From the sequence record LR756504.1: DNA of 64,000 nt; one strand, written 5' to 3'. The notes under the pieces were generated by a model, which ran no database searches, had not been told where the DNA came from, and saw only the letters and a list, made by a program, of their open reading frames with translations. A program made the position numbers and the translations under genes. Shown here in pieces: positions 17,396-60,708 of the stretch. Positions within the stretch are counted from its first letter, which is position 1; each line of letters begins with the position of its first letter.

Positions 17396-19069
17396 ATGAA
17401 GTATTTAAAGAAATACGGTAATTTTTCTATTAATGAGGCTACTGAAAATGAGTCTATTCTTATAAAGAATAAAGGTATGTCTAAAGATGAAGAAAAAGCA
17501 TTTTTAAATGACATTTTTACATATATCAAAGGTATTGAAAATATTTCAGATATTTTAAATAATAAAGTTAGAATTAAAAATGATGATATTATAGTAGTAG
17601 ATAGAAGAGGAAAAAATGTACTTTTTAAATATAAGCAGGATAGTAATGAAAAAATTAAAGTTTACATTAAATCTGACTTATTTGAGCAAGGTAAAAAAGA
17701 AGACATATTGAATCTTTTAATTAGTAAAGGAGCGGATGTAGAAGTATCTAAACCAGAAGAAAAATATGATAAAAAAGTAGAGGTTAAAACTGAGCCTAAA
17801 ACAAATATACAAAAAATATCATGGGAAGATTTTAATAAGAAGTGGGTATCTGTTATTAATTTAATTAAAACAGATGGTGTTAAAAATGGTGTACCATTAT
17901 TAAAAATTGCTGACATGAATTCATTATATACAAGTAAGAAAGAATATGTTCTGTTTGTACAAGAGTTTTTAAATTTTAATAATAAAAGTAATTTAATACT
18001 TGATGGTAAATTTGGAAATAATACTTCATTAGAAGTTAGGAAATTTCAAATTGCTAATAATTTAGCAGATGATGGTGTAGTTGGACCTTTAACATGGGAG
18101 AAAATTATGGATTTATCGGGTAATCCGATAAAAGGGTTAAAAATTATTTCAACTTCAACACCAATAGTAAATAATGTTAACAAATTAACTTCAATTAAAG
18201 TAGGTAGTTATTTAAATTCAAAGACTGTTGCATCTTTATTTGAAAATAAAATATTTGAAGCAGTAGTATCTAAAAATGATGTGAAAGTTAAAGTTTTAGC
18301 TAACGATGGTAAAACAATAAAATTACAATTTTCAAATTTAGGTAAAATTGTAGAAGAAGTATTTAATTTAGATGTTAATGGTGCTATAATTAAAGATATA
18401 GCTAAAATGTCAAAAGTTAAAATTGCTTTAGGTATTGAAAGAGAGTCCGTAACTATTGAAAACAGAAAAGGTATTATAAAGGATGTACGCGGTAAAGATA
18501 TGTCATTAGAAACTCTAAAAAATGCAGGAAATGCTTGGTATAATAATCCTAACACAGTTTTAGCTTTAATAGTAAACAATGCTGATAATTCTAATGCAAT
18601 TCATGGTATAAATGAATTATATTTTAAAAATACAAATAGTAATTTATTTCAATTTGCTTTTGATGGAAAATATGAATCCTCTTGGTCGGATGCAACTAAA
18701 TCTATATTTACTTCTTCTATTCTTTCGCCTGTTGCACTTTTTGCAATAGCTGGTACTGGATTTAATGTTGCTTGGAATATGAGAAAGAATTATACTACAC
18801 AATTTAATTTACTTGATATTTTAACTACATATTTACAAGATGCTGAAACAGATGCTAATGTATTACATTGGTGTATAGATGGACCTGGTACAGAAGATAA
18901 TATAATAGAAATGTTAATTAATAAAAGAGCAGGAAAACCTGCTTCATATAAGCAACGAATAGCATCAGAGTATTTATCAAAATATAATGCTACTTTGGGT
19001 GATGATTTAGCAGATGATGATGTTGATTCTGAGTTAATTGGAAAAATAGTTCCAAATTATATAGCATAG
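17396..19069 (+). CDS. Leader-bearing protein with peptidoglycan-binding domain and C-terminal annexin-like repeat(s)
   Basis: MKYLKKYGNFSINE leader; LILDGKFGNNT..EVRKFQIANNLADDGVVGPLTW (PG_binding_1 pattern); DANVLHWCIDGPGTEDNIIEMLINKR...I..EY..KY...L.DDL. Confidence 0.7.
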   Translation: MKYLKKYGNFSINEATENESILIKNKGMSKDEEKAFLNDIFTYIKGIENISDILNNKVRIKNDDIIVVDRRGKNVLFKYKQDSNEKIKVYIKSDLFEQGKKEDILNLLISKGADVEVSKPEEKYDKKVEVKTEPKTNIQKISWEDFNKKWVSVINLIKTDGVKNGVPLLKIADMNSLYTSKKEYVLFVQEFLNFNNKSNLILDGKFGNNTSLEVRKFQIANNLADDGVVGPLTWEKIMDLSGNPIKGLKIISTSTPIVNNVNKLTSIKVGSYLNSKTVASLFENKIFEAVVSKNDVKVKVLANDGKTIKLQFSNLGKIVEEVFNLDVNGAIIKDIAKMSKVKIALGIERESVTIENRKGIIKDVRGKDMSLETLKNAGNAWYNNPNTVLALIVNNADNSNAIHGINELYFKNTNSNLFQFAFDGKYESSWSDATKSIFTSSILSPVALFAIAGTGFNVAWNMRKNYTTQFNLLDILTTYLQDAETDANVLHWCIDGPGTEDNIIEMLINKRAGKPASYKQRIASEYLSKYNATLGDDLADDDVDSELIGKIVPNYIA

Positions 19070-25933: not shown

Positions 25934-27895
25934 ATGCCTAAACAAATAATACTCAGTGATGAATTGGTATCGGTTTTAAAATCTATCGATCATAGATTCT
26001 CTACAATACTTATTGATTCACATGAAAATAAGGAAGAAGTGGTTGATAATTCTTATATAGCTTTTTCTAAGGAAGAAGGTGAAGTATCATATTTACCAGT
26101 AAAGCGAGAAAATTCTAAAAATGGAAAAGAGTTAACTGAAAGTGATAAATGGCTAACTGGTAGACAGTCCATGTCTATTGGAAAATGGGTAAGAGCAATT
26201 TTACAAATTAAAGGTGTCCAATATAAAGAGTTTGAATTGGAAGAATTTGTAAATCAATATAAATATCAACAATTTGATTTTAATTTTATTTTAGTTAAAG
26301 GTCAAGATATTGTTAAATGGTACAAAGAAAAAAATTACGATAATCGGTATGGTAGTGGTAGTCTTTTTAATAGTTGTATGAGAGCCGTAAGCTCGGACTA
26401 TTTCAAAATTTATAGAGATAACGAAAATGTTTCCATGTTGTGTCTAATAAATAAAGAAACAAAGAAACTTATTGGTAGAGCTATTGTATGGGATAAAACT
26501 TCTATCAATGGCGAAGATTCGGTATTTTTAGATAGAATATACACAACAAAATCTCTATTTGAATCAGCAGTTAAAAATTATTGTAAAAGTAGAGGTTGGT
26601 ATTTTAAAAATAATCAAGGTAGTGGAAATGTATCTATTAGTAATGGTAAAAAAACTATAGAAAATCCAAATATTATATTTCATCTAAATGAAAAAATAAA
26701 TTGGGAAAATTGTCCTAAAATGCCATATATTGATACAATGTCATTTTTTGGATATATTTCTAATAATGATAAATGTTTACCAGTTCTTACTTCATATAAT
26801 AAATGTAATTTTAAATTTAATTTTAAAGGTACTGATGGAAATATTTATGATAATGTAAATTATGATAGTAGAAGAGACTTACTTAATAGGAGATTGACTG
26901 TTGGTGATTTAATTTTAATTAAATATGATAATGGATATGCTTGGATTGACGATACTGATTATGGAAGAGTATATCAAGAGAATTTTATATTTAATATTAA
27001 ATTGATCAAAGGTAGTGATGAATTGATAACTGTTAAAGGCGTAAAGAAAAATTTAAAATCTAAATTTAATCATAGTGATACTAATATAATATCACATATT
27101 GGTGATGTAGTCCCAACAGAATATCATGTATATTTATTTGATTTATTTAAAGATGATTTAATTTTTGAAGTAGATAATACTTATCAATATTTAAAACAAT
27201 ATACTCAATTTAAATTATATTCTATATGTTCAGAACATTTTAAAATGGTTCTTGATGAAGCACCACAGACAGTAATTTCGAGTGATATTACACAACTATC
27301 TAAAGAGCTATTAAATATAATTTTAGAAAAAAATCCAGAAATTATATTTAATATTGATATTCAAAAATTTATTAGAACTCAACATTTATTTGAAGAGACG
27401 GTTATTCAAAAATATATTATAAAATATCCCGATTTGTCTTTAATCGAAGGTAAAATAGCTATAAAGGTATCTAAAAAAATAATTGAAAAAATATGCAAGT
27501 CTAATATGTATAAAGTCACTAAAAATGAAATAGAAAATAAGTATGGTGTATCGAAATGTTTTTTAACAGATAGTGGTGATGATGATATTTATATTCAAGC
27601 TGAACCATATTGGTTTACTTGTTTATCACTTAAAACTAAAGTAAAACGTTTGCGAGAATTAAGTAAAATAGAAAAACTTATAAAATTTATAACTAAAGAT
27701 AAATCTATACCATATGATTATGGTGAAGTTATTGGTGTAAATGATGGATATAGAAGAGATTCCATTCGAGTTAAATTTAAAAATGGTGATGTTTATTGTT
27801 CAGTTAAAGAATTAACAATTTTAGAAAGAGATTTAAAAGAAAACTTCTATCAATATTTAAATACGCAATCACACTATGATATGTTTAGATTTTAG
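25934..27895 (+). CDS. SCM/GRAIVW/DRIY family paralogue 2
   Basis: SLFNSCMR, GRAIVW, FLDRIY, GWYFK, PYIDTM; leaderless. Confidence 0.85.
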   Translation: MPKQIILSDELVSVLKSIDHRFSTILIDSHENKEEVVDNSYIAFSKEEGEVSYLPVKRENSKNGKELTESDKWLTGRQSMSIGKWVRAILQIKGVQYKEFELEEFVNQYKYQQFDFNFILVKGQDIVKWYKEKNYDNRYGSGSLFNSCMRAVSSDYFKIYRDNENVSMLCLINKETKKLIGRAIVWDKTSINGEDSVFLDRIYTTKSLFESAVKNYCKSRGWYFKNNQGSGNVSISNGKKTIENPNIIFHLNEKINWENCPKMPYIDTMSFFGYISNNDKCLPVLTSYNKCNFKFNFKGTDGNIYDNVNYDSRRDLLNRRLTVGDLILIKYDNGYAWIDDTDYGRVYQENFIFNIKLIKGSDELITVKGVKKNLKSKFNHSDTNIISHIGDVVPTEYHVYLFDLFKDDLIFEVDNTYQYLKQYTQFKLYSICSEHFKMVLDEAPQTVISSDITQLSKELLNIILEKNPEIIFNIDIQKFIRTQHLFEETVIQKYIIKYPDLSLIEGKIAIKVSKKIIEKICKSNMYKVTKNEIENKYGVSKCFLTDSGDDDIYIQAEPYWFTCLSLKTKVKRLRELSKIEKLIKFITKDKSIPYDYGEVIGVNDGYRRDSIRVKFKNGDVYCSVKELTILERDLKENFYQYLNTQSHYDMFRF

Positions 27896-33357: not shown

Positions 33358-33708
33358 ATGAAATTTTTAAAGAAATTTAACTCTTTCGTTAATGAAAGCA
33401 AAACCTTTACTGCTGGTTTATACCCACACTTTGAAACAGATGATATAATTTATATTGAAAAAGTTCACGAAAATGGCGATGTAGAAGCTTTTGAATTGTT
33501 AGCTACTTTGGATGATATAGTAAAATGGTTTGTAGATAAACACGGTAGAGATACTTTTGAAGATCAATTTAATCCAGAAGAAGGACATACCACCAAAGAT
33601 TGGGATATGTCAGATGAAGAAATTGAAGAGGTTGTTAAAAATAATGATCAATATCTTAAAGAATTCTGTGAAGATAAAATAGCTGAGTGGGTAAAAGTTT
33701 CTGAGTAA
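33358..33708 (+). CDS. Acidic hypothetical protein with capsid-targeting-like leader
   Basis: MKFLKKFNSFVNES. Confidence 0.7.
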   Translation: MKFLKKFNSFVNESKTFTAGLYPHFETDDIIYIEKVHENGDVEAFELLATLDDIVKWFVDKHGRDTFEDQFNPEEGHTTKDWDMSDEEIEEVVKNNDQYLKEFCEDKIAEWVKVSE

Positions 33709-33711
33709 TTT

Positions 33712-35964
33712 ATGATTGATAAATTGTTAAATGTTCTTATCGGATTATTACAAGAAAAAGAGTTGATATTAAGTCCTACATTATTTTCTAAATTAGAATT
33801 GATGAATGATAAAGTTGCAGATTTTATTTTAAAATGTGCTTCAGAAAATGAAGATACTGATATGTCATATTTTGATATAACTAAAGATGATGGTATGGTA
33901 TCATTTTTAAAAAATAGATGGGATGAAGAAGTCACAGATAAATTTAATTCCAATAGAAGAGAAAAAATGAAAATTAGCCGCCTTGTAATGGTACTATCAT
34001 CTAAGATGAATGTTCAATTTACGAACACTGAAATAGAACATTTCATCAACAAATATAAAGCATCACAAAAAGTAAGAGAAGATGAAGAAACCATAAAGCT
34101 TGTGAAAGGACAAGATATAGTATTCTATTATAATGAAGATAATTATCAACCAGGTGGTGGTGAATATTGTTCTTTATATAGATCGTGTATGAGATATGAT
34201 GATTGTTCAAATTTTTTTAAAGTTTATACTGATAATTCTAATGCTTCATTGTGTGTTTTATTATCAAATGATAAGAAAGTTGAAGCAAGAGCTATTGTGT
34301 GGAATAACATAGTAGTCAATGGTAAAATTGGCANNNNNNNNNNNNNNNNNNNNNNCATAAATGATGGTGCTGAACAAGCAATGAAAAATTATGCGGAAGA
34401 AAAAGGTTGGTGGTTTAGAGTAAAGCAAAGTAATGATTATAATGAAATATTTAATGGTGTGGAATCTCTCTATGATCCTAAATTGAGAGTATTATTACCA
34501 ATTAATATAAGATGGGGTGGTAGTAATATTAGAAAACCTTATATGGATTCTATGAGATTTTTAAAATATACTATTCAAAATAATGAATTAGTATATTGTC
34601 TTGAAAATTATTCTAATAATAATGATTATATGGAAATGTGGGATAGTCAAATTGGTGGTTATAGTAATAATAATAGTAGATATATTAATCCGTACAAGGC
34701 TATATTAAAAATATCACAACTTTCTAATATATCGTTAGATAAAATAAAAAGAATAGATATTAAAGATGGTGTCGAAGAATATAGTGTTGGTGATGATGTA
34801 TATGTTAAAATTGATATTAGTAATGATTCTATAAGAAATATTATAGTGGGTGATCCCAGTTTAGTAGCTATAGCAGGTGAAGTTAAAGAATTTGTTAATG
34901 GAAGAACATTAGTAGTTGATTTACATAATGAAATATCAGAGTATGTTAAAGATAATACTGAAGAAGTATTTTATGAAACTATCAGTAAAAAAACAATTTC
35001 AGAATTAATAAGTTCGAGTGATATCATTAAAGTTAAAGTAGTATTAAAAAAATTAGTATCTGAATATTTCACATTTTTTAAAAAACATTTTAATCTTAAT
35101 GATTATGTTATTGTAACTAAAGAATTATCAAATTATATGGATAAACATAGTCTACCAAATGGTGCTAAAAAATTAGTTGGTAGAATTTATAAATTGATAG
35201 AAACAGATAGAGAACATATAGCAAATATAGAATTAAGAGATGTTAAATGGGTTAAAATTGTTGGTGATTATACTGATTATAAAAGCTTGATAATACCAGA
35301 AATTGCTTTAGAACCTATTAATATTATGACTTTAGATAATAAAAATTTAAAAAGTATTGATTATATAGTATCATTAATTGATAACGATAATATTAAACCA
35401 ATATTGTATAATTTGATATGTGAAGTACTTTTATCGAAATATATTAAAAACTCTATTGTTATAAAAACACCAGAAATAGGGGATAGAATTATTATAACAA
35501 GAGATAATAAAAATTTAAGAAGTGTTAACAATGGTTGTATTGGAATAATTAACGATACTGATAATGGTTATTTTGGTGTTGTATTTAATGAGCCTGTAAG
35601 AAATGGTAGCTCTTTACATAGTGTATGTGAGCAAGGTTGGGGTAAAATTATAGAACGTGATATATTTGAAGTGGTAAATAAAAATTTCAAAATGGAAGAA
35701 TTTACATTACTTATTAATCATAGTGACTCATTTTTAAAAGTTCTTTCAAACAATGTTACTGATTTTGACGTTAAAAGATTAATTAGTATTTTTGATATAT
35801 CTGATGATATTTTCTTCGAGAATGTAGATTTTACAGAGGTTGCATCTGCTATTTTATATGATGACAATAAGATGAAAGAGCTATTGAAAGAAATTTCAGA
35901 AGATAATATTTATTTTTATGATATAGAACATGGTGAAATTATTTATAAAAAACAAACATTTTAA
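33712..35964 (+). CDS. SCM/GRAIVW/DRIY family paralogue 3 (22-N gap over the DRIY motif)
   Basis: SLYRSCMR, ARAIVW, GWWFR, KPYMDSM; N-terminal extension ending LLQE; C-terminal SH3-like IGDRIII...FGVVF. Confidence 0.8.
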   Translation: MIDKLLNVLIGLLQEKELILSPTLFSKLELMNDKVADFILKCASENEDTDMSYFDITKDDGMVSFLKNRWDEEVTDKFNSNRREKMKISRLVMVLSSKMNVQFTNTEIEHFINKYKASQKVREDEETIKLVKGQDIVFYYNEDNYQPGGGEYCSLYRSCMRYDDCSNFFKVYTDNSNASLCVLLSNDKKVEARAIVWNNIVVNGKIGXXXXXXXXINDGAEQAMKNYAEEKGWWFRVKQSNDYNEIFNGVESLYDPKLRVLLPINIRWGGSNIRKPYMDSMRFLKYTIQNNELVYCLENYSNNNDYMEMWDSQIGGYSNNNSRYINPYKAILKISQLSNISLDKIKRIDIKDGVEEYSVGDDVYVKIDISNDSIRNIIVGDPSLVAIAGEVKEFVNGRTLVVDLHNEISEYVKDNTEEVFYETISKKTISELISSSDIIKVKVVLKKLVSEYFTFFKKHFNLNDYVIVTKELSNYMDKHSLPNGAKKLVGRIYKLIETDREHIANIELRDVKWVKIVGDYTDYKSLIIPEIALEPINIMTLDNKNLKSIDYIVSLIDNDNIKPILYNLICEVLLSKYIKNSIVIKTPEIGDRIIITRDNKNLRSVNNGCIGIINDTDNGYFGVVFNEPVRNGSSLHSVCEQGWGKIIERDIFEVVNKNFKMEEFTLLINHSDSFLKVLSNNVTDFDVKRLISIFDISDDIFFENVDFTEVASAILYDDNKMKELLKEISEDNIYFYDIEHGEIIYKKQTF

Positions 35965-38953: not shown

Positions 38954-38985
38954 TTTGTTTTTTGTGAAAAAAAACATTAATTTTG
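38954..38985 (+). promoter_or_regulatory. Bacteroidota-type promoter
   Basis: TTTG - 20 nt - TAATTTTG (38978). Confidence 0.65.
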
Positions 38986-39020: not shown

Positions 39021-40622
39021 ATGAGCAAACAAGACATGAATAAAAAGCATCTAAAGAAAGATTATTCTGATTTTTTGAAAGAAAGTCAAACACCAGCGGA
39101 TTTACCTGCTACAGAAAAAGATGCTCTAATAAAACTCGATCATGCACCAGCTGGTAAAGTTAGGGTGAGATTTGCACCATCGCCAACAGGTGGATTACAT
39201 ATTGGTGGATTGAGAACTGCTATTTATAATTATTTGTTTGCTAAAAAACATGGCGGTGATTTCCTTTTAAGGATTGAAGATACCGATAGAACCCGCTTTG
39301 TTGACACGGCAGAAGATTACATTAAGGATGCCTTGGCGTGGGTAGGTATTACACCAGATGAATCTCCTTGGGTTGGTGGACCACATGCACCATACAGACA
39401 ATCTGAAAGAGATTACAAGCCTTTCATTGAAGAACTTATTGCTAAAGGTGGTGCATATTATGCATTTGATAGTTCGGAAGAACTTACTGCTGCGCGTGGT
39501 GATAGGCAAGATTGGTCTTATAATAGACAAACGAGAATGAATATGAAAAATTCATTCACAATGTCAGAAGAAGAAGTTGAAGCTAAAATCAAAGAAGGTA
39601 ATTATGTTGTAAGATTTAATACACCTGAAAATAAAACTGTCAGTTTTACTGATATTGTTAGAGGTAATGTATCTTTTAACTCTAACCAAACAGATGATAA
39701 AGTACTTATTAAATCTGATGGTATTCCAACATACCATTTTGCTAATATTTGTGATGACCATAACATGGAAATCACCCATGTAATTAGAGGTGAAGAATGG
39801 TTACCGTCTACACCACTTCACATTATGTTGTATGATGCTTTTGGTTGGACACCTCCGAAATTTGCACATTTACCGCTATTACTTAATCCTGATGGAAAAG
39901 GTAAATTAAGTAAGAGAAAAGCAAATGAATATGGTATTCCAGTATTCCCTCTTGATTGGGAACAAACTGATGATAAGGGTGATAAAAATGTAAATATGGG
40001 TTTCAAAGGTAAAGGATATGAATCTGATGCTATTGTAAATTTCCTATGTTTACTTGGTTGGTCTCCTGGTGATAATAGAGAGATGTTGTCAATGGATGAA
40101 CTAGTGGATGCATTCTCACTTGAAGGAATTCAAAAGGCTGGTGCTAAATTTGATATTAAGAAAGCAGATTGGTTCAATCAACAGTACTTGAAAAAAGCTA
40201 AAACTGATGATGTATTTAAATCATCTGGAATTTCTGACGAAGAAAAAGATAAATACACACCTGAACAACTCGATAAAATTGCCGAGCTTGCAAAAGAACG
40301 TTCTGTATTTAGAACTGATTTTAAAGCGGTTGTTGATATTTTCTTCAGTGTGCCAGCAATTGATGCAACTAAAATAGAGCCAGAATTTAAAACAGTGTTC
40401 TCTAAATTTGTTGATGAATCTGAAGGTATTGAATGGAGAGGTGATGTTATTAAACAAAAAATATTTGACATCTGTAATGAAGTTGAAATTAAGATGGGTA
40501 AAGTAATGCCTTCTCTTAGAATGGCATTAACAGGTGGTATCCCTGGTCCAGATTTAATGACTACTTCTGAAATTCTTGGAAAAGAAGAAACTATTAGTAG
40601 ATTAAAAACAGCATTAGCATAA
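39021..40622 (+). CDS. gltX: Glutamyl-tRNA synthetase with N-terminal extension
   Basis: RVRFAPSPTGGLHIGG, LRIEDTD, YRQSER, PTYH, THVIRGEEW, KLSKR, LRMALTG. Confidence 0.96.
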   Translation: MSKQDMNKKHLKKDYSDFLKESQTPADLPATEKDALIKLDHAPAGKVRVRFAPSPTGGLHIGGLRTAIYNYLFAKKHGGDFLLRIEDTDRTRFVDTAEDYIKDALAWVGITPDESPWVGGPHAPYRQSERDYKPFIEELIAKGGAYYAFDSSEELTAARGDRQDWSYNRQTRMNMKNSFTMSEEEVEAKIKEGNYVVRFNTPENKTVSFTDIVRGNVSFNSNQTDDKVLIKSDGIPTYHFANICDDHNMEITHVIRGEEWLPSTPLHIMLYDAFGWTPPKFAHLPLLLNPDGKGKLSKRKANEYGIPVFPLDWEQTDDKGDKNVNMGFKGKGYESDAIVNFLCLLGWSPGDNREMLSMDELVDAFSLEGIQKAGAKFDIKKADWFNQQYLKKAKTDDVFKSSGISDEEKDKYTPEQLDKIAELAKERSVFRTDFKAVVDIFFSVPAIDATKIEPEFKTVFSKFVDESEGIEWRGDVIKQKIFDICNEVEIKMGKVMPSLRMALTGGIPGPDLMTTSEILGKEETISRLKTALA

Positions 40623-40656
40623 ATAAAAATGGGGAGTAAAGCTCCCCATTTTTATT
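40622..40656 (+). terminator. Intrinsic terminator
   Basis: AATAAAAATGGGGAG-TAAAG-CTCCCCATTTTTATT. Confidence 0.8.
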
Positions 40657-40685
40657 AAACTTTTTATAAATGAAAAATTTAAGTC

Positions 40686-41288
40686 ATGGGAGATAAAGAA
40701 ACTACAAAAGAAAATCCATTATTGTATGGTGAAGAAAAACTTGTAAATACTGTAACTGGTGCAGGTGATTATATTTCGGCATATACAGAAGAACGTATGT
40801 TTGATATTGAAGATGTTAAATTGAGAACTTTATTACCAGGTATGTTATATTCCTATGCTAAGAGAGTTGTTGATACTGACATATTAGAAAAAGAATTGGC
40901 AGAAGCAAATAACAAACACTTGAGATTATATGCAGATTTTGATAATTTTCGTAAAAGAACTGCAAAAGAAAAAACTGAAATATTAACAAATGCTGGGGAA
41001 AGTGTAATCAAATCAATTTTACCAACATTAGATAACTTCGAAAGAGCTATTTTAGTAACTGATGACGAAGGTGTTAAATTGGTTTATAATGGACTTGTAA
41101 AAGTATTAGAAGCCAAGGGTGTAAAGATTATGGATTGTATGGGAGCAGATTTTACACCAGAATTACATGAGGCAATTACACAAATACCAACGGAAGGTAT
41201 GAAAGGTAAAATAGTAGATATCTTAGAGAAAGGATATTTATTAAATGATAAAGTTATTCGCTACGCAAAAGTTGTAGTAGGTTCTTAA
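40686..41288 (+). CDS. grpE: GrpE nucleotide exchange factor
   Basis: LRLYADFDNFRKR, LPTLDNFERA, F.PELHEAI, KGYLLNDKVIRYAKVVV. Confidence 0.93.
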   Translation: MGDKETTKENPLLYGEEKLVNTVTGAGDYISAYTEERMFDIEDVKLRTLLPGMLYSYAKRVVDTDILEKELAEANNKHLRLYADFDNFRKRTAKEKTEILTNAGESVIKSILPTLDNFERAILVTDDEGVKLVYNGLVKVLEAKGVKIMDCMGADFTPELHEAITQIPTEGMKGKIVDILEKGYLLNDKVIRYAKVVVGS

Positions 41289-41303
41289 ATTTAAGAATAA
41301 AAA

Positions 41304-41335
41304 CTTGTTTTTATCTTATAAATTTTGTAATTTTG
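41304..41335 (+). promoter_or_regulatory. Bacteroidota-type promoter
   Basis: CTTG - 20 nt - TAATTTTG (41328). Confidence 0.6.
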
Positions 41336-41351
41336 TATAAATATTCAATAT

Positions 41352-42560
41352 ATGTCTAATAACAATAAATTAGTTATAGTTCCTAAAAGAACAAATTATA
41401 GCGTTTATCCTCCAATAACCGCACCAGAAATACCTATTACATTGAATGTGAACCTATTGAAAGACGTACACTCTGTTCAAACGAGTTCATATAAATGTGA
41501 TAGAATGATGCAGTATATTATAGGCTTTTTGAAAAAAAAGAAAAATGTTCATGTTCAAGAGGATGCATATGGTAATATTTATGCAACTAAAGGAAATGCT
41601 GATTTATATCCAGCAATTGTTTCTCACACAGATACAGTTCATAGTATTCATGAACATTTTCAGGTTATGCAGGATGAAAATATTATTTGGGCATTTTCAA
41701 ATGATAAACGAACTCAAGTAGGTGTTGGTGGTGATGACAAAGTGGGTGTGTTCATGTGTCTTTCTATGCTTGAATTACTTCCAAAAGTTAAAATTGCTTT
41801 TTTTAAAGACGAAGAAGTTGGTTGTATTGGTTCAGGTAGAGCTAATATGCAATTTTTTGATGATTGTGGATTTGTTTTGCAATGCGATAGAAAAGGTTCT
41901 GACGACTTCATTTATAATGCGGGTACAGAATTGTATGGTGCTAATTTTGAAAAAGCTGTTGCACCATATTTAGAAAAACATGGGTATAGAGAAACTACGG
42001 GGTTAATGACAGATGTTTTAGAATTGAAGGGAAAAGGATTAGCTGTAGCATGTGCTAATATGTCATGTGGTTATTACTCGCCTCATTCTGATAATGAAGT
42101 TCTTGATTTAAATGCAGTGCAAAAATGCTATAATTTAGTATCCGAATTGATGTTAGATTTCATAGATACTCGTTTTCCACACGATAAAAACAATAAGCAT
42201 AGTAAGGGGGGCTATTCGTACTCATATAGTGGGTACGGGTATGGGCGCGATAATGATGATGATTTTGACAACTACGACTATGGAAGAAGCTCGTATTTTA
42301 GAAATGATAACAGAGAAAATATCGAAGATGACGAAACGGATTTTGATGATATTTATAACAATGGTGGCTTATCTATTAGTGAAGATGATATTTTAGAAAA
42401 TTGGGGACTTACTAAAAAAGAGAATGATTATTATGCAGTAAATGATAAATGTAAGGAGTGTAAAGAAATTCTAGAAGAAGACATTGATGGTATAAAACTT
42501 TGTCCATGTTGTAATTCGTACAAACATATACCAAAAATGTATTTAAGAGATACAATTTAA
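41352..42560 (+). CDS. M28/M20-like zinc peptidase with acidic linker and C-terminal zinc ribbon
   Basis: SHTDTVH, GGDDKVG, DEEVGC.GS, QCDR, TDV, GYY.PH; CKEC...CPCC. Confidence 0.8.
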   Translation: MSNNNKLVIVPKRTNYSVYPPITAPEIPITLNVNLLKDVHSVQTSSYKCDRMMQYIIGFLKKKKNVHVQEDAYGNIYATKGNADLYPAIVSHTDTVHSIHEHFQVMQDENIIWAFSNDKRTQVGVGGDDKVGVFMCLSMLELLPKVKIAFFKDEEVGCIGSGRANMQFFDDCGFVLQCDRKGSDDFIYNAGTELYGANFEKAVAPYLEKHGYRETTGLMTDVLELKGKGLAVACANMSCGYYSPHSDNEVLDLNAVQKCYNLVSELMLDFIDTRFPHDKNNKHSKGGYSYSYSGYGYGRDNDDDFDNYDYGRSSYFRNDNRENIEDDETDFDDIYNNGGLSISEDDILENWGLTKKENDYYAVNDKCKECKEILEEDIDGIKLCPCCNSYKHIPKMYLRDTI

Positions 42561-42565
42561 TTTTT

Positions 42566-42592
42566 AGGGGAGATTTTTTCTCCCCTTTTTTT
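42566..42592 (+). terminator. Intrinsic terminator
   Basis: AGGGGAGA-TTTTT-TCTCCCCT plus T-run. Confidence 0.75.
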
Positions 42593-42612
42593 ATTAAAAA
42601 AGTGCTTCAAAA

Positions 42613-42665
42613 TTTGTATTTTCTACTTTTTTTCTATAACTTTGTAAAATAGATTTTAATATATA
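42613..42665 (+). promoter_or_regulatory. Tandem host-type promoter and late motif
   Basis: TTTG - 20 nt - TAACTTTG (42637), followed by TAATATATA (42657). Confidence 0.6.
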
Positions 42666-42682
42666 AACAAACATAAAAATCA

Positions 42683-44842
42683 ATGGATTTCAAAAAAACT
42701 TTCTTGAAATTTACCCAATGGACTATTCCACACGGATATGAGGAAACTATTACTCACCTTTTACCAAATGGGTTGGAAAAGGATGAAGTTGGTAATTATA
42801 GAATCGTTATTGGCGAAAGTGAAACATTATTTACTTGCCACTTGGATACAGTATCTACTCGTATGAAAATTAATCATATCATACAAGGTGATATCATTAG
42901 AACTGATGGCACAACAATATTAGGTGGTGACAATAAAGCAGGAGTATGTATTTTGATGTATCTAATTGAACAAAATGTTCCTGGTACATATTACTTCTTT
43001 GTGGGTGAAGAAACTGGTTGTATTGGTTCAAGATGGGCTTTAAAAAATGAGCCTGACTATTTTAGAAAGTTTAAGAGAGCTATTGCATTCGACAGGAAAA
43101 AATCGGGTTCAATTATTACAAAACAAAGAGGTAGTATTTGTGCAAGTATAGATTTTGCCGAAGCTCTTTCGAAAGATTATGGTAAAAATGGATTACAATA
43201 TCGTCCTGATGATACAGGGGTTTATACCGACACAGCCGTATTCATGGGTATAATTCCAGAATGTACAAATATTTCAGCAGCAGTTTGGGGTGAACATACT
43301 AGGGATGAATATGTAAATATCAAATTAATTGAACAAATTGCACATGCATCTGCTAAAATTAATTGGGAGAAATTGCCAACAAAACGTACACCAAGAGACG
43401 AAGAAAAAGAGAAAAAGAAAATTACTACTTATGGTAATAATTATGATGAATATGGCAGTGGTCACACACATTATAATAGTAGAAATAAAAGCACGTCTTA
43501 TCAACATAATAATACTTGGCAAAATACAACCAAAAAAGATGATGATGGTATTCCTGTCGATGGTGCTGATTTAACTTTTAATGTTGATAATGTTCCATCT
43601 TTCTTTGAATTAACTAAAATTCAAAGTCATGGTGATACTGATGATAAATCTGAATATTTTGCGGATAAAGAAGGTACAATTTGGATGATCACTATTAATA
43701 GTGATACTGTATCTATTGCAAAAGAATTGCAGAATGGTATGCCAGATATTGTATATCATGAATCATTGAAGTCAAATATTCCAAAAAATTTCAATGAATT
43801 ATGGGAAAGAATTAAAGATGTTGTGTCACTAAAAAGAAAAAAGAAAAAGAAGAAAACTCAAAATGCCGTTATTAAAGAGACTAAGCGTACAGTGACTTTA
43901 ATAGTTCCGCCGTCTGTTTCATTCATTAAGATTCAAGATATTATTAATGATGATAGTAGAATTAAAGCCGTTGAATTAGTAAGAAATGGTAGTGCTGTTA
44001 GCGGAGATAAAAAATATTTTGATATAGCTTTAGTATTTGATAGTAGCAAACCATATGAAGTTGTATCCAATATAGTGGATAGCACTATAGAAAAGTTTAA
44101 AAAACAACTTGGTGCTATTGTTAGTACTAAAGCTGGTACAGTTGTTGGTAAATTTGATAATAGTGGTACTCAAATGAATATGTTTGGTAAACCACTTACT
44201 ATTGATAATATAGTTAAAGTTTTTGATCTTAAAAAAGCAGAAGTTGGTGAAGAAGGTTCTCTAATATTTAAGGAGCGATTTGAAGATAAAGATGGTACTA
44301 TTTATAATATTGAAATTGATGGAAATATTGTAAGCGTATTCTTGATAAGTAGCTCTAATACTAAAGGACAATATAAACTTTTATTTCATGGTGCTGTAAA
44401 ATCGTGGGATGAATTATATGATTCTATTAAAGATAAAGTTGGATTTTCTAAAAAGGATAGTGAACCATTATATAATGAGAAAAATTTTGATAAAGCCTTC
44501 GAACTTGTAAATATTAATTCTGATAGTAAACCAGGTGTTTCTCTTAAAGATTCTTATAGAGATGTTAAGGGTAATGTGTGGACATTTACAATACAAGCTG
44601 ATGGTGATACTACAATTTTCTTAAATAGAAGCAGTATCGCTAGTAGTGGACAAGGATACTTTGTTATCAGAATTAATGGTATTAAATCTTATGATGATTT
44701 TGTTAAGAAAATAAAAGAAAGTGATAGAAGTGTAGATTCATTTGATAAGACGGTATTATTTAATCTTATTGATACTTATAAATTCAAAAAATCTTCTGTA
44801 ATTGATGATGAAGAGGAAGAAGAGGATGACGACGATGAATAA
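42683..44842 (+). CDS. M28/M20-like peptidase paralogue with three ~90-aa repeats and acidic tail
   Basis: N-terminal ~240 aa closely similar to 14724 (MDFKKTF, FTCHLDTV, LGGDNKAG, AFDR, GEHT); three repeats; ends DDEEEEEDDDDE. Confidence 0.82.
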   Translation: MDFKKTFLKFTQWTIPHGYEETITHLLPNGLEKDEVGNYRIVIGESETLFTCHLDTVSTRMKINHIIQGDIIRTDGTTILGGDNKAGVCILMYLIEQNVPGTYYFFVGEETGCIGSRWALKNEPDYFRKFKRAIAFDRKKSGSIITKQRGSICASIDFAEALSKDYGKNGLQYRPDDTGVYTDTAVFMGIIPECTNISAAVWGEHTRDEYVNIKLIEQIAHASAKINWEKLPTKRTPRDEEKEKKKITTYGNNYDEYGSGHTHYNSRNKSTSYQHNNTWQNTTKKDDDGIPVDGADLTFNVDNVPSFFELTKIQSHGDTDDKSEYFADKEGTIWMITINSDTVSIAKELQNGMPDIVYHESLKSNIPKNFNELWERIKDVVSLKRKKKKKKTQNAVIKETKRTVTLIVPPSVSFIKIQDIINDDSRIKAVELVRNGSAVSGDKKYFDIALVFDSSKPYEVVSNIVDSTIEKFKKQLGAIVSTKAGTVVGKFDNSGTQMNMFGKPLTIDNIVKVFDLKKAEVGEEGSLIFKERFEDKDGTIYNIEIDGNIVSVFLISSSNTKGQYKLLFHGAVKSWDELYDSIKDKVGFSKKDSEPLYNEKNFDKAFELVNINSDSKPGVSLKDSYRDVKGNVWTFTIQADGDTTIFLNRSSIASSGQGYFVIRINGIKSYDDFVKKIKESDRSVDSFDKTVLFNLIDTYKFKKSSVIDDEEEEEDDDDE

Positions 44843-45844: not shown

Positions 45845-46279
45845 ATGATTAAGAATTTTAACAATTTTATTCAAGAATCTAAAAGCCCTACTAAAATACT
45901 ACAATCATTAACGGATTTAGTACAAAAAAGATTTAAAAATATTGACGAAAATTCACATATTTTCTGTAATATTCTTCATAAGTACTTTAATTTTGATAAA
46001 TTTCTATTTGTCTCTAAATTAGAATTTTCTGATAATGTTAAGGATATTAGACATGTATACGTTTATTTAAATGGTAGATATTTAGATGGTGATGGTTTTC
46101 ATACAAAAACTGATATAATGGATAAATTTAAGATTAGTAATGAAACTTTTAATGATTTAGCTTTTATTTCCGATTTGGGTAAACTTCATGAATATTCTAA
46201 AATTGTTATTACAACTTTATCAGAAAAGCAAACAAAAGAAATAGAACATTTAGTTAAGCAATTTAGTCAGATGTTATAA
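45845..46279 (+). CDS. Hypothetical protein with capsid-targeting-like leader
   Basis: MIKNFNNFIQES; HVYV...YLDGDG. Confidence 0.65.
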   Translation: MIKNFNNFIQESKSPTKILQSLTDLVQKRFKNIDENSHIFCNILHKYFNFDKFLFVSKLEFSDNVKDIRHVYVYLNGRYLDGDGFHTKTDIMDKFKISNETFNDLAFISDLGKLHEYSKIVITTLSEKQTKEIEHLVKQFSQML

Positions 46280-48953: not shown

Positions 48954-50984
48954 GTGATATATTTAAAGAGATTTTTACAATATGATGCAATATTAGAAAG
49001 CTTATTACTTGAAAAAGTACTATATTTTGGTGAAAAAATGAGAGATGTACTTAAAAATATGAAGCATCCATATGCAAAGTATATGGTAAATATGGATCAT
49101 GGTGATAATTTAGAAGATACTGATAATTCTTATATTGAATATAGTCCTAAATTGGGTATGGTTTCTTGGCTTCCTGCTAATAGAGAAATAGATTTCCAAA
49201 CTAAACAAGAATTACCTGAAACTGAAAAGTGGGCCACTAAAAAAAGACAAGATGTTTCTATAGGTAAAATTGTTTCTGCTATATTGAAAAAATCACCATA
49301 TGTCAATATATCTGAATCTGAATCTGAATTAGAAAAGTTTATTAACGAATATAAAGCTATACAAAATACAGGTAGTTTTAAATTAGTTAAAGGTTATGAT
49401 GTAAAGAAATATTATTTTGAAGGTAATTATGATCATGAGTCGGATGAAAGTTCACATTCTTCATTGTTNNNNNNNNNNNNNNNNNNNNNNNGTTGTCAAG
49501 AGTATTTTAGTGTCTATATTAAAAATCCTAATGTATCATTATGTATTTTATTGACAGATGATGATAAGATACAGGGTAGAGCTATAGTATGGTATAATTC
49601 TACTATAGATGGTAAACCAGAAGTTTATATGGATAGAATATATGCGGTTAGTGATTCTATCACCGATAAATTTAAATCATATGCACATTCTAACGGTTGG
49701 TATTGTAAAACAAAACAAGGATCAGAATATTATGTTGTGAGCAATGGTAAGTTGGTAATAGAACATCCTAATATAAAAGTTATATTACCTGATGGTGATT
49801 GGGAAACTTGGGAAAAACCATATATGGACTCATTGAGATATTTTTCATATGATGTTATTGATGGTAAATATATTCCAGTTTTATTTAATTATTTCATGCA
49901 AAATGCTTCAAACTGGAAACAAAAATGGGACGAAACAAATGGATTTTTTATTTCCAATAGATATTATGTTGATACACTTAAAGAAGTTAGAGATTTATCA
50001 TCCAATACAGGATTAGATTTTAATAATTTATTATTAGCAAATCCTACTAAAATAAATGGAAATCCTGAGATATGGAAAGTAGATGATAAAAATGTTTTAG
50101 TTATGAATTACTATTCAACTATTATATCAAGTGTGATAAGAAATGAAAGCGAAGAAGATATAATGAAATTAAAACCATTTATTTCGAATTATGAAACGCA
50201 CGAACTTGTTAGAAAAATTGGTTCAAAAGTTTTATGTGAAGAATATCGCTCTGATATAATGATGGATATGCTAGAAAATACTAATGTTTATATTAAGGGA
50301 ATTGATAGTTCTGAAATAAGAAACTTCATTCAAAAGATATTAGGTGTGCAAATAATGTCTAAAGAAATTAATGAAAATTTTTCTAAGGTTAGAGAATTTA
50401 TAATTGTGTTAAGGCCTATAACATTTGGTATAATTTTAAATGATAATTTTGAATTAAATATTAATATAGATGGTGATATTAATGCTTTGGAAAATGAATA
50501 TTACACAAAGCTTAAAGATGATGAAAAAAGTAAACGCTATTTAATTTCTATTATTGAAAATGAATATAATATTGGTGGAGAAAGTGCAGTTATAAAAATG
50601 TGTAAAGAATATATTAGAACAGTTGTTTTACAAGATAAAGATGTAATTGAAATGTATAACGAATATATAGCAAATAGTCGTCAAGTAAAAATGAATTTTA
50701 TAGGAAAATATTTCAATGAATTTGTACAAAGTGTTAATACTACATATTTGCTTAACATAATAAAAGAAAATACGGAAAAAATCAGAGAATTTGCTATAAA
50801 AAATATTTTAACTAATAATCCATCTTTTGCAATTAATGAAATATTAGAATCTAATACAGAATTCGGAAAAAATACTAGAATTTCATATGTTCAAAAATGG
50901 CTTAGATTAAATTTTCCTAATGTAGAAGTCAAAGCTGAAATTCGTGGTGATAAATTTTGTTATATTGTGGACAAATTTCCTTAA
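48954..50984 (+). CDS. SCM/GRAIVW/DRIY family paralogue 4 (23-N gap over the SCM motif)
   Basis: GRAIVW, YMDRIY, GWYCK, KPYMDSL; leader MIYLKRFLQYDAILESLLLE. Confidence 0.82.
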   Translation: MIYLKRFLQYDAILESLLLEKVLYFGEKMRDVLKNMKHPYAKYMVNMDHGDNLEDTDNSYIEYSPKLGMVSWLPANREIDFQTKQELPETEKWATKKRQDVSIGKIVSAILKKSPYVNISESESELEKFINEYKAIQNTGSFKLVKGYDVKKYYFEGNYDHESDESSHSSLXXXXXXXXXCQEYFSVYIKNPNVSLCILLTDDDKIQGRAIVWYNSTIDGKPEVYMDRIYAVSDSITDKFKSYAHSNGWYCKTKQGSEYYVVSNGKLVIEHPNIKVILPDGDWETWEKPYMDSLRYFSYDVIDGKYIPVLFNYFMQNASNWKQKWDETNGFFISNRYYVDTLKEVRDLSSNTGLDFNNLLLANPTKINGNPEIWKVDDKNVLVMNYYSTIISSVIRNESEEDIMKLKPFISNYETHELVRKIGSKVLCEEYRSDIMMDMLENTNVYIKGIDSSEIRNFIQKILGVQIMSKEINENFSKVREFIIVLRPITFGIILNDNFELNINIDGDINALENEYYTKLKDDEKSKRYLISIIENEYNIGGESAVIKMCKEYIRTVVLQDKDVIEMYNEYIANSRQVKMNFIGKYFNEFVQSVNTTYLLNIIKENTEKIREFAIKNILTNNPSFAINEILESNTEFGKNTRISYVQKWLRLNFPNVEVKAEIRGDKFCYIVDKFP

Positions 50985-51069: not shown

Positions 51070-53004
51070 GTATATAATATAAAAAATATGCCTAATACAA
51101 AACAAAAATCTACAAAAGCTATTATATTAAGTGATAAAATGCTTGATAAATTATCTAAGATTAATCATTTCATTTCCAAGAATTTAATTAATTTACATAA
51201 AAAGAGAGAAGCTTTAGATATAAAGTTTAGTTATATAGATATTTCTACAGAAGATGGAATGGTTAGTTATTTAAGTACTAATAAAGAAGTTGACTTTAGA
51301 ACGGGTAAAGAAATATCAGATAATGAGAAATGGATAATAAAAAGTAGGACAAATGTCCGTGTAGGTGCGGTAATTCGTTCAGTATTAGAAGCTAAGAATA
51401 TTAAATTTACTGATTCCGATATTGAAGATTTTTCGAATAAATTTAGATCATCCGAATCTAAATTTAGATTCGAATTAGTTAAAGGTGATGATATTAAGAA
51501 ATGGTATAATTTTATTAATTATGCTAAAGATATAAATGATAGTAGTTTAAATGGTAGCTGCATGAGACACAATCTTTGTGGAACTTTTTTATCAGTTTAT
51601 ACTAAAAATAAGAATGTTTCTATGCTTGTCTGTATCGACAAAAATGAAAAACTTCTTTCAAGAGCTATCGTATGGCATAATTCTATTATAGGTAAGGTAA
51701 AAAATCAAACTTATGTTGATAGAATTTATTGTTATGATGATAGATTTCTTTCAACTGTAAAAGATTATATTCATTCTAAAAGTTGGTGGTGTAAAGAAAG
51801 ACAGAGTAGTGATAGCTTTATATTAAATAATGGTAAGACTACTTTGAGTAATCCTAATATTAAAGCTAATATACCGTTGTTGAATTGGTGTTCTTTAAAG
51901 AAGCCTTATATGGATACTATGAAGTATCTTAAAGAAGATTTAGTTAATGGTGAATTGATGTTATACTTAGGAAACAAAGATGGTAAAAGTGTGGAATATT
52001 GGACAGCCGTTAATGGTGGCTATAATGAAAATCGTGGATATGATTCTATATTAAAACGATTGGGTATTCTCTCTAAACATTTCAAAGTTAAAGTTGATAA
52101 TATTAAATTTAAAGATGATGTTTTCTTTTTGAAAAATAAAAAATATAATTTAGTTAAATATAATGGACAACTTTCAAAGTTTGTTAAGGATAATATTAAT
52201 TGTTTGTCTGAAATTGATTTTTCTAAATTTGTACCAATAAACACAATTATTCAACAACATACAGATTTAATAGATAAAATTTATCGGAAAAGAATTGATA
52301 AATATATCTTACAAAATTTAAGCGTAAGACAATTAAAACCTAATAATTTTTATAAATTGCTTACTGATATTTTATCAGAAGGACAAAATATAGATAAACT
52401 TGTAAATATTTTAGAAAGAAGAATCAAAGAGAGAAATACACAAAAATATAGTTTTATACGAGATATTCCTTCTCTTTATTCATATCGTTATGATACATTA
52501 GATTATCCACTTTTAGGTATAAATAAAAGTGATAACAAAAATGTTAAAATGAATAAAATAATAAAATATATCAAAAAACAAAATTTTGCGCATGTTTGTG
52601 CAATACAATTTTTAGATAAAATTATTTGTATCGATGATATAATCAGTATGATGGATAAGAATGCATTGAAAACTTTGAAATCGCAGGCAATGGATTACAT
52701 TTTTTGTAGTGGTATTACTATGGGTGTGTTAAAAGTTATTTTTAATACAGATAATACAAATAACCTATTTAAAAAAGTTAAGAATATCATTAATATAAAA
52801 TGTATTGATGTTGATGTTTTAGATACTAAGTCGATTGCTAAATTAGTTAATAAAATGGGTGCTAAATTAATTAGTTATGGAAATAAAGATAATCTTATGA
52901 ACAAATATATTTTAAAAGAAATTGTTGATAAAAAAGTTAAAGATAAGAAAAAAATTGTGAAGAAGGTTATAAAAAAATCTGTAATGAAGAAAGTCCTGAA
53001 ATAA
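51067..53004 (+). CDS. SCM/GRAIVW/DRIY family paralogue 5 (likely start 51088)
   Basis: SLNGSCMRH, SRAIVW, YVDRIY, SWWCK, KPYMDTMKY; very basic C-terminal tail. Confidence 0.85.
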   Translation: MVYNIKNMPNTKQKSTKAIILSDKMLDKLSKINHFISKNLINLHKKREALDIKFSYIDISTEDGMVSYLSTNKEVDFRTGKEISDNEKWIIKSRTNVRVGAVIRSVLEAKNIKFTDSDIEDFSNKFRSSESKFRFELVKGDDIKKWYNFINYAKDINDSSLNGSCMRHNLCGTFLSVYTKNKNVSMLVCIDKNEKLLSRAIVWHNSIIGKVKNQTYVDRIYCYDDRFLSTVKDYIHSKSWWCKERQSSDSFILNNGKTTLSNPNIKANIPLLNWCSLKKPYMDTMKYLKEDLVNGELMLYLGNKDGKSVEYWTAVNGGYNENRGYDSILKRLGILSKHFKVKVDNIKFKDDVFFLKNKKYNLVKYNGQLSKFVKDNINCLSEIDFSKFVPINTIIQQHTDLIDKIYRKRIDKYILQNLSVRQLKPNNFYKLLTDILSEGQNIDKLVNILERRIKERNTQKYSFIRDIPSLYSYRYDTLDYPLLGINKSDNKNVKMNKIIKYIKKQNFAHVCAIQFLDKIICIDDIISMMDKNALKTLKSQAMDYIFCSGITMGVLKVIFNTDNTNNLFKKVKNIINIKCIDVDVLDTKSIAKLVNKMGAKLISYGNKDNLMNKYILKEIVDKKVKDKKKIVKKVIKKSVMKKVLK

Positions 53005-56803: not shown

Positions 56804-56815
56804 ATGTATTTATTG

Positions 56816-56888
56816 TAGCAGGAGCAAGACTCGAACTTGCGACCTCAAGGTTATGAGCCTTGCGAGATACCATCTTCTCCATCCTGCG
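56816..56888 (-). tRNA. tRNA-fMet (CAT), initiator type; CCA not encoded
   Basis: Cloverleaf CGCAGGA...TCCTGCTA, anticodon loop CT-CAT-AA, C1:T72 mismatch, A11-T24; only two G-C pairs at the base of the anticodon stem. Confidence 0.92.
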
Positions 56889-56985
56889 ATGTATTATAAT
56901 AAACGATTATTTGTTTAAAATGTTATTTATATATTTGTAAAAATTTGTCATTTTTTCCCACTTTTCTACATACTATTTAATATTG

Positions 56986-57060
56986 TCACCCTGACAGGAC
57001 TCGAACCTGCATTGTCGGGGTTAGAATCCCAACAGTCTAACCAAATTGACGTACAGAGTG
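56986..57060 (-). tRNA. tRNA, most likely Arg (TCT), with atypical anticodon arm; CCA not encoded
   Basis: Acceptor CACTCTG/CAGGGTG-A, T arm GCAGG-TTCGAGT-CCTGT; anticodon region TTGGG-ATTCTAA-CCCCG. Confidence 0.75.
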
Positions 57061-59136: not shown

Positions 59137-60708
59137 TTATACAGGTTTATATGTACCGTCTGTGGAAGACCATTGTTGTTTAGTATTATTTGTCATTTTA
59201 GAGGATAGATAATATTTAGGATTCTTACTATCTTTAATTTTTAATTTATATGTTCCTGGATTATTTAATGGTTCAACACAATCGGCTGGTACAAAGTAAT
59301 CAGAAATTTCACTCTCTGTAAAATAATACCCTCTCATCGTACCTTTAAATAGAGTATCATTACTATCTCTAACTGTAAATACTTTACCAATATATTTAAT
59401 CATATCCGCCCAACCATACTTTGCTATATCAGCAGTTATTTTTATTTTTTCACCTGGTTGAAGTAATCTATATTCAGAATTCTTAAATTCATTATTTGAT
59501 GAACCTGTAGTATTGTTAAAATATTTTAAAGTATCTAAGTATGGTTTGGATATCCTACTCCATCCAACATTAGGCAACTCAAATTTTAACACATCATTAT
59601 ATGTAATGCTTCCATTTGAAATTGTACTATCTTTATGTGATTGAACTACTTTAAACCACCAATTTTTTCTTTTAGCAAATGTTTTAAATAATTCTACTTC
59701 TGCTTCAGAATTATAGTAAATTCTATCCATGAAATTTATTTTCTTACCATCTTCCATTTCAACACCATTCCATACAATAGCTCTACCCATTAATTTACCA
59801 TCATCATTTAATAATATTAATAATGATACATTAGGATTATCTGTATAAACAGTAAAGTAATTATCACACTTATCATGTTTCATGCAACTTTTATTTAATG
59901 GTGATTCCTCGAAACCTGATGTTTGATAACTCGAATAATTATACCATTTTTTAATATCTTGTCCTTGTACTATTTGAAAGTTTTTAAAGATAGTAACTTC
60001 CAATTGAATAGATTTAAAAGTATTACCAAATTTTTCAATTTCTACATCCGCAAAAGATTGTCCTTCTTTTTGCATCAAAGCTCTTACTAGTTTACCTATC
60101 GATGTTGTTTGTCTATATCTATTTTTCCAAAATTCTTCATTCTCGACATTTTTTTCTCTATTAGCTGGTAGGAAACTTACCATACCTGGTTCACCTTCAA
60201 TATTCAAATATAAATGTTGAAGAGATTCTTTATTATTTTCTAAACTTAAAATAAATTGTGCTATTTTATCATCCTTGGGAAATTTTTCTAAAATCTCAAT
60301 AATTTTAGAGCTTAAAAATTCCTTATTTCCTATAGATAGTGGATTTTCTATTTGTTCTGGTGTCAAAGCCAATAATTTTTCGGTTGGTTTAATAGTATGA
60401 GCCTGTCCTCTTCTTTCACCTTTCTTAATTGTTATTAATTTCTTTAAATACAACCAACTTATATGTCTTGCATAACTGTTAGTATTTTCTTTTTGTTTAG
60501 TTATTGGATTAACACCAACTAATTTTGTAAGCGTCATACCTTCTGGGTTAGCTTGAAGGAGTTTAATATAATGTGAAATCTTTTCCCAATTTCTGAATTT
60601 TAAACCTGATACTTCACCCTTATCAATTCTATTAAAGTAATGATCATCTCTCATTTCTTCTTTTTCTTCATTTAGAAAATCATCGAAAAATAGCATTGGA
60701 TGTAACAT
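59137..60708 (-). CDS. SCM/GRAIVW/DRIY family paralogue 6 with leader, N-terminal winged-helix and inserted SH3-like domain
   Basis: MLFFDDFLNE leader; SPLNKSCMKH, GRAIVW, FMDRIY, NWWFK, KPYLDTLKY. Confidence 0.85.
   Translation of the reverse strand: MLHPMLFFDDFLNEEKEEMRDDHYFNRIDKGEVSGLKFRNWEKISHYIKLLQANPEGMTLTKLVGVNPITKQKENTNSYARHISWLYLKKLITIKKGERRGQAHTIKPTEKLLALTPEQIENPLSIGNKEFLSSKIIEILEKFPKDDKIAQFILSLENNKESLQHLYLNIEGEPGMVSFLPANREKNVENEEFWKNRYRQTTSIGKLVRALMQKEGQSFADVEIEKFGNTFKSIQLEVTIFKNFQIVQGQDIKKWYNYSSYQTSGFEESPLNKSCMKHDKCDNYFTVYTDNPNVSLLILLNDDGKLMGRAIVWNGVEMEDGKKINFMDRIYYNSEAEVELFKTFAKRKNWWFKVVQSHKDSTISNGSITYNDVLKFELPNVGWSRISKPYLDTLKYFNNTTGSSNNEFKNSEYRLLQPGEKIKITADIAKYGWADMIKYIGKVFTVRDSNDTLFKGTMRGYYFTESEISDYFVPADCVEPLNNPGTYKLKIKDSKNPKYYLSSKMTNNTKQQWSSTDGTYKPV

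Follow-up and report, generated by a model that had tools for sequence, protein, structure and literature searches.

The gene described here encodes a glutamyl-tRNA synthetase (GluRS) and lies in the 64,000-nucleotide window, the whole stretch of DNA under analysis, whose G+C content is 26%. The window is identical to part of the analysed record, which covers 288,572 bp of LR756504.1, an uncultured megaphage of 636,363 bp. GluRS scores 450.7 bits against TIGR00464 gltX_bact (cutoff 289.95) over residues 46-530, and contains the class I signatures HIGG, of the HIGH type, at residue 60 and KLSKR at residue 295. The core of the enzyme is modelled by AF2 at pLDDT above 90. The original prediction placed an extension with a leader-like motif before R-V-R-F-A-P-S-P, and it is indeed present: 47 residues precede this segment and contain Y-S-D-F-L-K-E-S at residues 15-22. 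The features of the locus are the following:

38978-38985, + strand: TAATTTTG, Bacteroidota host-type TAnnTTTG element, 36-43 nt 5' of the GluRS ATG
39021-40622, + strand: GluRS gene, 533 aa, TIGR00464 gltX_bact, with HIGH-type motif and KLSKR
39021-39161, + strand: N-terminal extension, residues 1-47, upstream of R48-V-R-F-A-P-S-P; cellular GluRS are without it
39036-39038, + strand: M6, second in-frame ATG, kept in the relative P0001
39063-39086, + strand: leader-like motif Y15-S-D-F-L-K-E21-S22, 3.7 bits on the leader profile of the genome
after E21, + strand: putative gp21-type cleavage site, L19-K20-E21 followed by S22, by its (L/I)-x-E sequence pattern
40686-41288, + strand: GrpE homologue, directly downstream of GluRS; the order GluRS-GrpE-peptidase is kept in relatives

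The order GluRS, GrpE, a peptidase-like protein of ~400 aa and a peptidase of ~720 aa (39021-44842, + strand) is kept in the related loci L009, L094 and L096, independently of the GluRS extension. Two paralogous large proteins of the window (14724-17324 and 42683-44842, both + strand) have a peptidase domain at the N-terminus (phrog_4191, ~1e-61 each), and their long C-terminal parts are uncharacterised. ARAGORN calls a tRNA at 56985-57060 (- strand) whose anticodon has four bases, 'tcta', and to which no amino acid can be assigned; it adjoins a tRNA-Met (56815-56888, - strand). The call may represent a tRNA with an 8-nt anticodon loop or of the frameshift-suppressor type, a tRNA with an intron, or a spurious prediction.

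The extension is translated and moderately constrained, less so than the enzyme. In the relative P0001, encoded at locus L094 and 94% identical, its frame is intact across two whole-codon indels, and all the core motif residues are identical. The extension and its counterpart in L094 differ by nine synonymous and seven non-synonymous codons in 45, compared with 121 synonymous and 22 non-synonymous in the 487 codons of the core, and hence the extension changes faster than the core. The preserved frame and the synonymous excess indicate that the extension is coding. Translation could in principle start downstream, for example at the GTG of V49, which would make the extension a 5' untranslated region; a GTG does occur at codon 49, and many GluRS begin shortly before R-F-A-P-S-P. 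This is very improbable, given the whole-codon indels and synonymous excess, the colinear match to a module that is clearly translated in ~80 homologues, and the promoter element placed upstream of the ATG at 39021. The mis-called start was rejected on the codon evidence from L094.

The motif occupies residues 15-21, compared with residues 7-13 in usual leaders. Counted from M6, nine residues precede it, so that it starts at residue 10 and ends at residue 16 instead of 21, nearer to the usual leader geometry. On the leader profile of the genome the match is weak (3.7 bits, E=1.2). The background of the loose motif is ~1 per 1000 positions, which gives ~4% for one chance match in 45 residues; a lone match is therefore unremarkable and the weight rests on the comparative evidence. 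The AF2 model of the extension has pLDDT 41-76 and is partly helical, with two low-confidence helices (residues 3-21 and 30-41). A predicted complex of the protease-scaffold residues 53-520, described below, with GluRS residues 1-60 scored 0.00, which counts neither way.

Leader-like N-termini are frequent in this genome. The 288-kb record has 324 ORFs without mutual overlap, and in these the pattern F..F[LIV].E occurs 18 times; 14 of the occurrences begin in the first 20 residues, where 1.3 would be expected. A profile built from the ORFs with the motif has its top 18 matches all at N-termini and finds further members, again always N-terminal. Leader-like starts are present in ~38 ORFs (~12%, or about an eighth). 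Their consensus reads M-K-x-[IL]-K-x-F-x-x-F-[LIV]-x-E or, more fully, M-K-x-[IL]-K-K-F-N-x-F-[LIV]-N-E-[SNK]; for the class as a whole the first aromatic position may be written as Phi (M-K-x-[IL]-K-x-Phi-x-x-F-[LIV]-x-E). The leaders end in Glu at residue 12-17, and almost all of the proteins that bear them have no match in PHROGs. In the window the class is represented by:

33358-33708, + strand: 116-aa ORFan with canonical leader MKFLKKFNSFVNES, 24.8 bits, ATATATA 27 nt upstream, no PHROG
45845-46279, + strand: 144-aa ORFan with canonical leader MIKNFNNFIQES, 22.6 bits
59137-60708, - strand: 523-aa member of a large paralog family, leader ending in FFDDFLNEE, 20.2 bits, ATATATA 13 nt upstream
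17396-19069, + strand: 557-aa ORF with leader-like start MKYLKKYGNFSINEA, ATATATA upstream, endolysin-like domain
9492-10085 and 4733-5116 (as also 17396-19069): looser leader-like starts

The endolysin-like domain of the 17396-19069 product spans residues 125-241 (phrog_2649, E=7e-10). Its presence on a leader-like ORF fits a cargo delivered by the virion, and the product is a candidate virion-delivered cell-wall hydrolase. The nicotinamide phosphoribosyltransferase encoded at 61481-63061 (- strand) has ~46 residues before the start of the PHROG model, and no leader motif within them.

The leader behaves as a module. In a paralog family of six, three members have a leader that ends in F-[LI]-x-E and the other three have their Met exactly at the next residue; at one such junction, FIKE followed by ALKDE in one paralog corresponds to M-ALRDE in another. 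The presence and absence of the leader behave likewise in a second paralog family, of eight members. The window also contains a paralog family of 470-770 aa (5962-8046, - strand; 25934-27895; 33712-35964; 49038-50984; 51088-53004; 59137-60708, - strand) with further members outside it, in which some proteins bear the leader and others do not; another family comprises six proteins of 520-575 aa encoded beyond the window. These leader-bearing families recall the paralogous inner-body proteins of the phiKZ-like phages.

The leaders are tied to a late-type promoter. The word ATATATA is the top enriched upstream word of the 288-kb record, with spacings of 10-14 or 25-34 nt to the start codon, and is found within 45 nt upstream of 27 of the 38 leader-like ORFs versus 50 of the 286 others (p=4e-11). 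The TAnnTTTG element shows the reverse distribution (1/38 versus 46/286). The two preferred spacings of ATATATA are seen, for instance, upstream of 33358, 59137 (- strand) and 17396, where the word marks structural and leader genes. It also stands 5' of the genes for the gp23-like capsid, the gp20-like portal and head closure, and a gp55-like late sigma factor is encoded 31.3-31.7 kb upstream of the window. The GluRS gene does not share this promoter type: no ATATATA was found upstream of it, and TAnnTTTG stands there instead, as the original prediction had noted. The relative L094 has TAACTTTG at the equivalent position, and an RNA ligase gene and a peptidase gene are, like GluRS, preceded by TAnnTTTG.

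With the shorter of the two spacings (10-14 nt), the mRNAs would have hardly any 5' leader. For this reason, and given the AT-rich codons of the leaders, the conserved N-termini could be AU-rich translation enhancers, acting at the mRNA level on late transcripts with short or no 5' leaders. The codons make this highly improbable. Seven different codons are used for the aliphatic position (Leu, Ile or Val), with no additional AT bias, which points to selection on the peptide; TTC accounts for 37% in the leaders versus 22% genome-wide, aromatic and aliphatic residues interchange at the leader positions, and leaderless paralogs occur. The enhancer reading was rejected on the codon usage at the conserved positions.

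The head module of the phage is T4-like. A 764-aa ORF (LR756504.1 185342-187636, - strand), located 36.4-38.7 kb upstream of the window and directly upstream of the capsid gene, encodes a prohead protease of the gp21 family (phrog_207, 6e-35). The gp23-like capsid protein (phrog_138, 1e-19) and the gp20-like portal (phrog_213, 8e-61) are encoded next to it. The C-terminal half of the protease ORF consists of 13 tandem 14-residue repeats, x-Y-S-E-Y-I-A-E-x-L-D-K-x-I, followed by an acidic stretch. This region reads as a fusion of the protease with a scaffold rich in potential (I/L/V)-A-E sites, and the same fusion is found in near-complete genomes of IMG/VR (476, 243 and 130 kb), each of which also has a gene for an extended GluRS. 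A profile of the repeats gave no significant score to the leaders or to GluRS (1.1 bits, rank 11 of 323), and the leaders are therefore not claimed to mimic the repeats beyond the pattern Phi-x-x-Phi-[LIV]-x-E. The T4 leaders and the repeat profile likewise give no significant score when compared.

In T4, the capsid-targeting sequence (CTS) is a propeptide of 10-20 residues through which the internal proteins, and Alt as well, reach the scaffolding core; gp21 removes it by a cut after Glu. The T4 record bears out the leader cited for IPII and IPIII in the original prediction: ipII and ipIII both begin M-K-T-Y-Q-E-F-I-A-E-A. The gp23 precursor has F-G-S-F-L-T-E65 before the Ala at its maturation site. 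All three show the (L/I)-x-E pattern that L19-K20-E21 forms in the GluRS of the megaphage. The CTS of IPI-III and Alt and the megaphage leaders share the core Phi-x-x-F-[IL]-x-E, are short and N-terminal, and are cut, putatively in the megaphage, after Glu; in both cases they are borne by diverse, fast-evolving proteins. Counterparts of the gp21 protease, gp23 capsid, gp20 portal and gp55 late sigma factor are all encoded by the megaphage. Some leaders of related loci come close to the T4 sequence (MKTYNQFINES, MKKFQEFLNEA). The leader profile of the genome gives no significant score to the T4 ipII and ipIII leaders, and the resemblance is therefore one of pattern.

The two systems also differ. 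The candidate cargo of the megaphage is a housekeeping aminoacyl-tRNA synthetase (aaRS), and its motif starts at residue 15, is off-consensus and lies behind an early or host-type promoter. In addition, the megaphage protease carries the 14-residue-repeat scaffold, and the leader class comprises ~12% of the ORFs as opposed to a handful in T4. In the giant phages phiKZ, 201phi2-1 and SPN3US, a gp21-related protease processes many internal head proteins, cutting on the C-terminal side of Glu; the propeptides, often found on paralog families, are thought to target the proteins to the prohead. Cleavage in these phages occurs at A/S/G-x-E, the propeptides are mostly longer than 100 residues, and no aaRS is among the reported cargo. 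The megaphage leaders, with (L/I/V)-x-E and 13-17 residues, are of the T4 style, unlike the phiKZ type. By analogy with T4, the leader class probably consists of targeting and cleavage propeptides.

Leader-like extensions recur among the GluRS of phages. Within the nearest 120 homologues, a clade of 85 sequences (support 96), on phage-like contigs of up to 630 kb, has an N-terminal module of ~53 residues in 79 of its 85 members. The module opens with M-K-Y-I-K-x-R-x-x-F-[LI]-x-E, in which the Glu is invariant and position 7, Phe in ordinary leaders, is a conserved Arg, and continues into a conserved acidic helical part (mean net charge -4.2). On the genome-wide leader profile, which was built from unrelated proteins, its first 13 residues reach 8-19 bits. 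Cleavage would leave ~40 conserved acidic residues on the enzyme, so that the module is not simply a propeptide to be discarded. In the AF2 model of a representative, the first ~15 residues are floppy (pLDDT 46-62), whereas residues 20-45 form helices at 74-81. The low confidence over the leader part, here and in the GluRS of the megaphage, suggests that this part is probably flexible. The GluRS genes of this clade are likewise preceded by TAnnTTTG, and only some of them by ATATATA. A second viral lineage has extensions of 22-23 residues that begin MKILKNYNDFTLNEN, and a third, which includes the 735-kb LR756501, has 27-29 residues beginning MKNMNLINLTEF..F..MMKES. At least three other phage GluRS lineages thus have leader-like extensions. 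The neighbouring genes follow the same trend: leader-type ORFs make up 34 of 371 in the loci with an extended GluRS and 6 of 469 in AT-rich viral loci with a short one (odds ratio 7.8), in a comparison of loci that are not phylogenetically independent.

The GluRS of LR756504.1 falls outside the 85-member clade, in a separate clade of five (support 99). The extension occurs there only in this enzyme and in P0001; P0003 and P0004 are of the short type, and the 34 extra residues of P0002 are unrelated to it. It is absent from the syntenic locus L009 (P0003, 79% identity) and from L011 (73%), with no trace left in the DNA of L009, and the megaphages LR745206 and LR756502 have a short GluRS. The match between the extension and the module of the large clade is weak (9.4 bits; 1 of 1000 shuffles scores as high) and consists of two colinear blocks, K-x-x-x-F-L-K-E-S and K-x-x-L-x-K-L-D, with the middle block of the module missing. 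No cultured phage of INPHARED has an extended GluRS. When the 53-residue module was run as a profile over 1.84 billion representatives, the sole matches were five short fragments of GluRS; full-length members are presumably hidden behind the 50%-identity representatives.

Cellular enzymes lack such N-termini. The original prediction had named an extension in cellular Bacteroidota GluRS as the observation that would speak against it. The comparison of host and phage enzymes finds the leader extension in none of the best 80 matches among 185,579 species genomes, all of them of the Bacteroidota type, so that this objection falls away. The catalytic and anticodon-binding core of these enzymes (TIGR00464) is 45-53% identical, with an equal domain order, and 73 of the 80 have fewer than ten residues before the first strand; the other seven are upstream-ATG artefacts without the leader motif. 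Eukaryotic aaRS bear appended N-terminal domains, such as Lys-rich tRNA-binding helices and GST-like domains. The phage extension is likewise an N-terminal addition to a canonical synthetase. In contrast to those appendages, it is short, acidic after the leader and confined to phage enzymes, and it begins with a motif common to unrelated late phage proteins.

Apart from the mis-called start and the mRNA-level signal, both unlikely, the main rivals to a functional leader are a relic of one and an appendage specific to GluRS. As a relic, the extension would go back to a leader-bearing ancestor or to N-terminal recombination, and would persist as a tolerated flexible tail on an early cytoplasmic enzyme that has lost its packaging role. 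This is rather unlikely. It would agree with the poor profile score, the displacement of the motif from the N-terminus, the deleted middle block of the 53-residue module, the host-type promoter, the loss of the extension in close syntenic relatives with nothing replacing it, and a ratio of non-synonymous to synonymous changes above that of the core. On the other hand, the non-synonymous changes (7 of the 16 changed codons) are below the neutral expectation, the frame was kept through the indels, P0001 has all the core motif residues, and several deep GluRS lineages retain leader-like N-termini.

An appendage specific to GluRS would be a small helical element with a regulatory role in the enzyme, or one that interacts with a partner from the phage or the host, and its likeness to the leaders would be superficial; this is unlikely. 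The module profile retrieves only GluRS fragments, residues 20-45 of the large-clade proteins are conserved and modelled as helices, position 7 has the conserved Arg instead of Phe, and the promoters are mostly of the host type, all of which would suit such an element. The scores of the first 13 residues on a profile made from other proteins are difficult to reconcile with it, as are the leader-like starts of two more lineages with different extensions and the use of leaders by neighbouring genes where GluRS is extended. The acidic character of the part after the leader also counts against it and makes a tRNA-binding helix unlikely.

The preferred reading, which is tentative and carries less than even confidence as a whole, is that the 47-residue extension derives from, or belongs to, the megaphage leader class, that the leaders are CTS-like and that some of the GluRS is packaged. 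Its parts differ in strength. The extension is fairly probably related to the leader class, because leader-like N-termini recur among phage GluRS, co-occur with leaders on the neighbouring genes and are absent from the cellular enzymes. The packaging of GluRS by this phage is plausible, short of probable; it is the weaker claim in view of an off-consensus, displaced motif, an early promoter, near relatives without the extension and a module most of which would survive cleavage. The parallel with other leaders drawn in the original prediction holds in so far as a CTS-like N-terminal family exists, and is weakened for GluRS itself by its low profile score, displaced motif and promoter.

According to the preferred reading, the leaders would bring late proteins into a prohead core built by the gp21-type protease fused to its repeat scaffold. 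Subsequently, the protease would remove them after (L/I/V)-x-E, and the copy on the GluRS of this phage would be one that is still recognised. The bulk of the GluRS would be made early from the host-type promoter and stay in the cytoplasm, and some of it may be loaded into the capsid, trimmed between FLKE and S, and delivered alongside the DNA. The host-type promoter counts against packaging and is not decisive, because a stable early enzyme could be captured during prohead formation. The original prediction supposed that an injected aaRS would pre-empt the shut-off of host translation, which is speculative. A conceivable purpose is the restart of translation in cells where GluRS or the charging of tRNA-Glu has been stopped by dormancy or by abortive-infection toxins. 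The broader proposition, that a widespread group of megaphages with T4-like heads and their relatives of 130-480 kb equip dozens of proteins with short T4-like leaders, repeatedly including their own GluRS, and so pack and inject an active aaRS, is doubtful at present.

The CTS principle and the propeptides of giant phages are already known. What appears from the sequences to be new is the T4-style system of short leaders in megaphages, the protease-scaffold fusion with YSEYIAE repeats and the aaRS as a recurrent carrier of a leader; a literature search found no report of the megaphage leader family, of the YSEYIAE fusion or of a phage aaRS packaged in virions. Should GluRS turn out to stay outside the capsid, the leader family and the fusion of protease and scaffold would still be concrete, testable features. 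If the leaders do direct proteins to the capsid, they would provide a sequence rule from which the injected proteome of uncultured megaphages could be read straight from their genomes, and the CTS and gp21 system of T4 would extend to a distant group of Bacteroidota-associated phages. An aaRS inside the capsid would add a new class to the known cargo of virions, by which phages would bring with them part of the translation apparatus, and it may be relevant to the infection of dormant or toxin-arrested cells.
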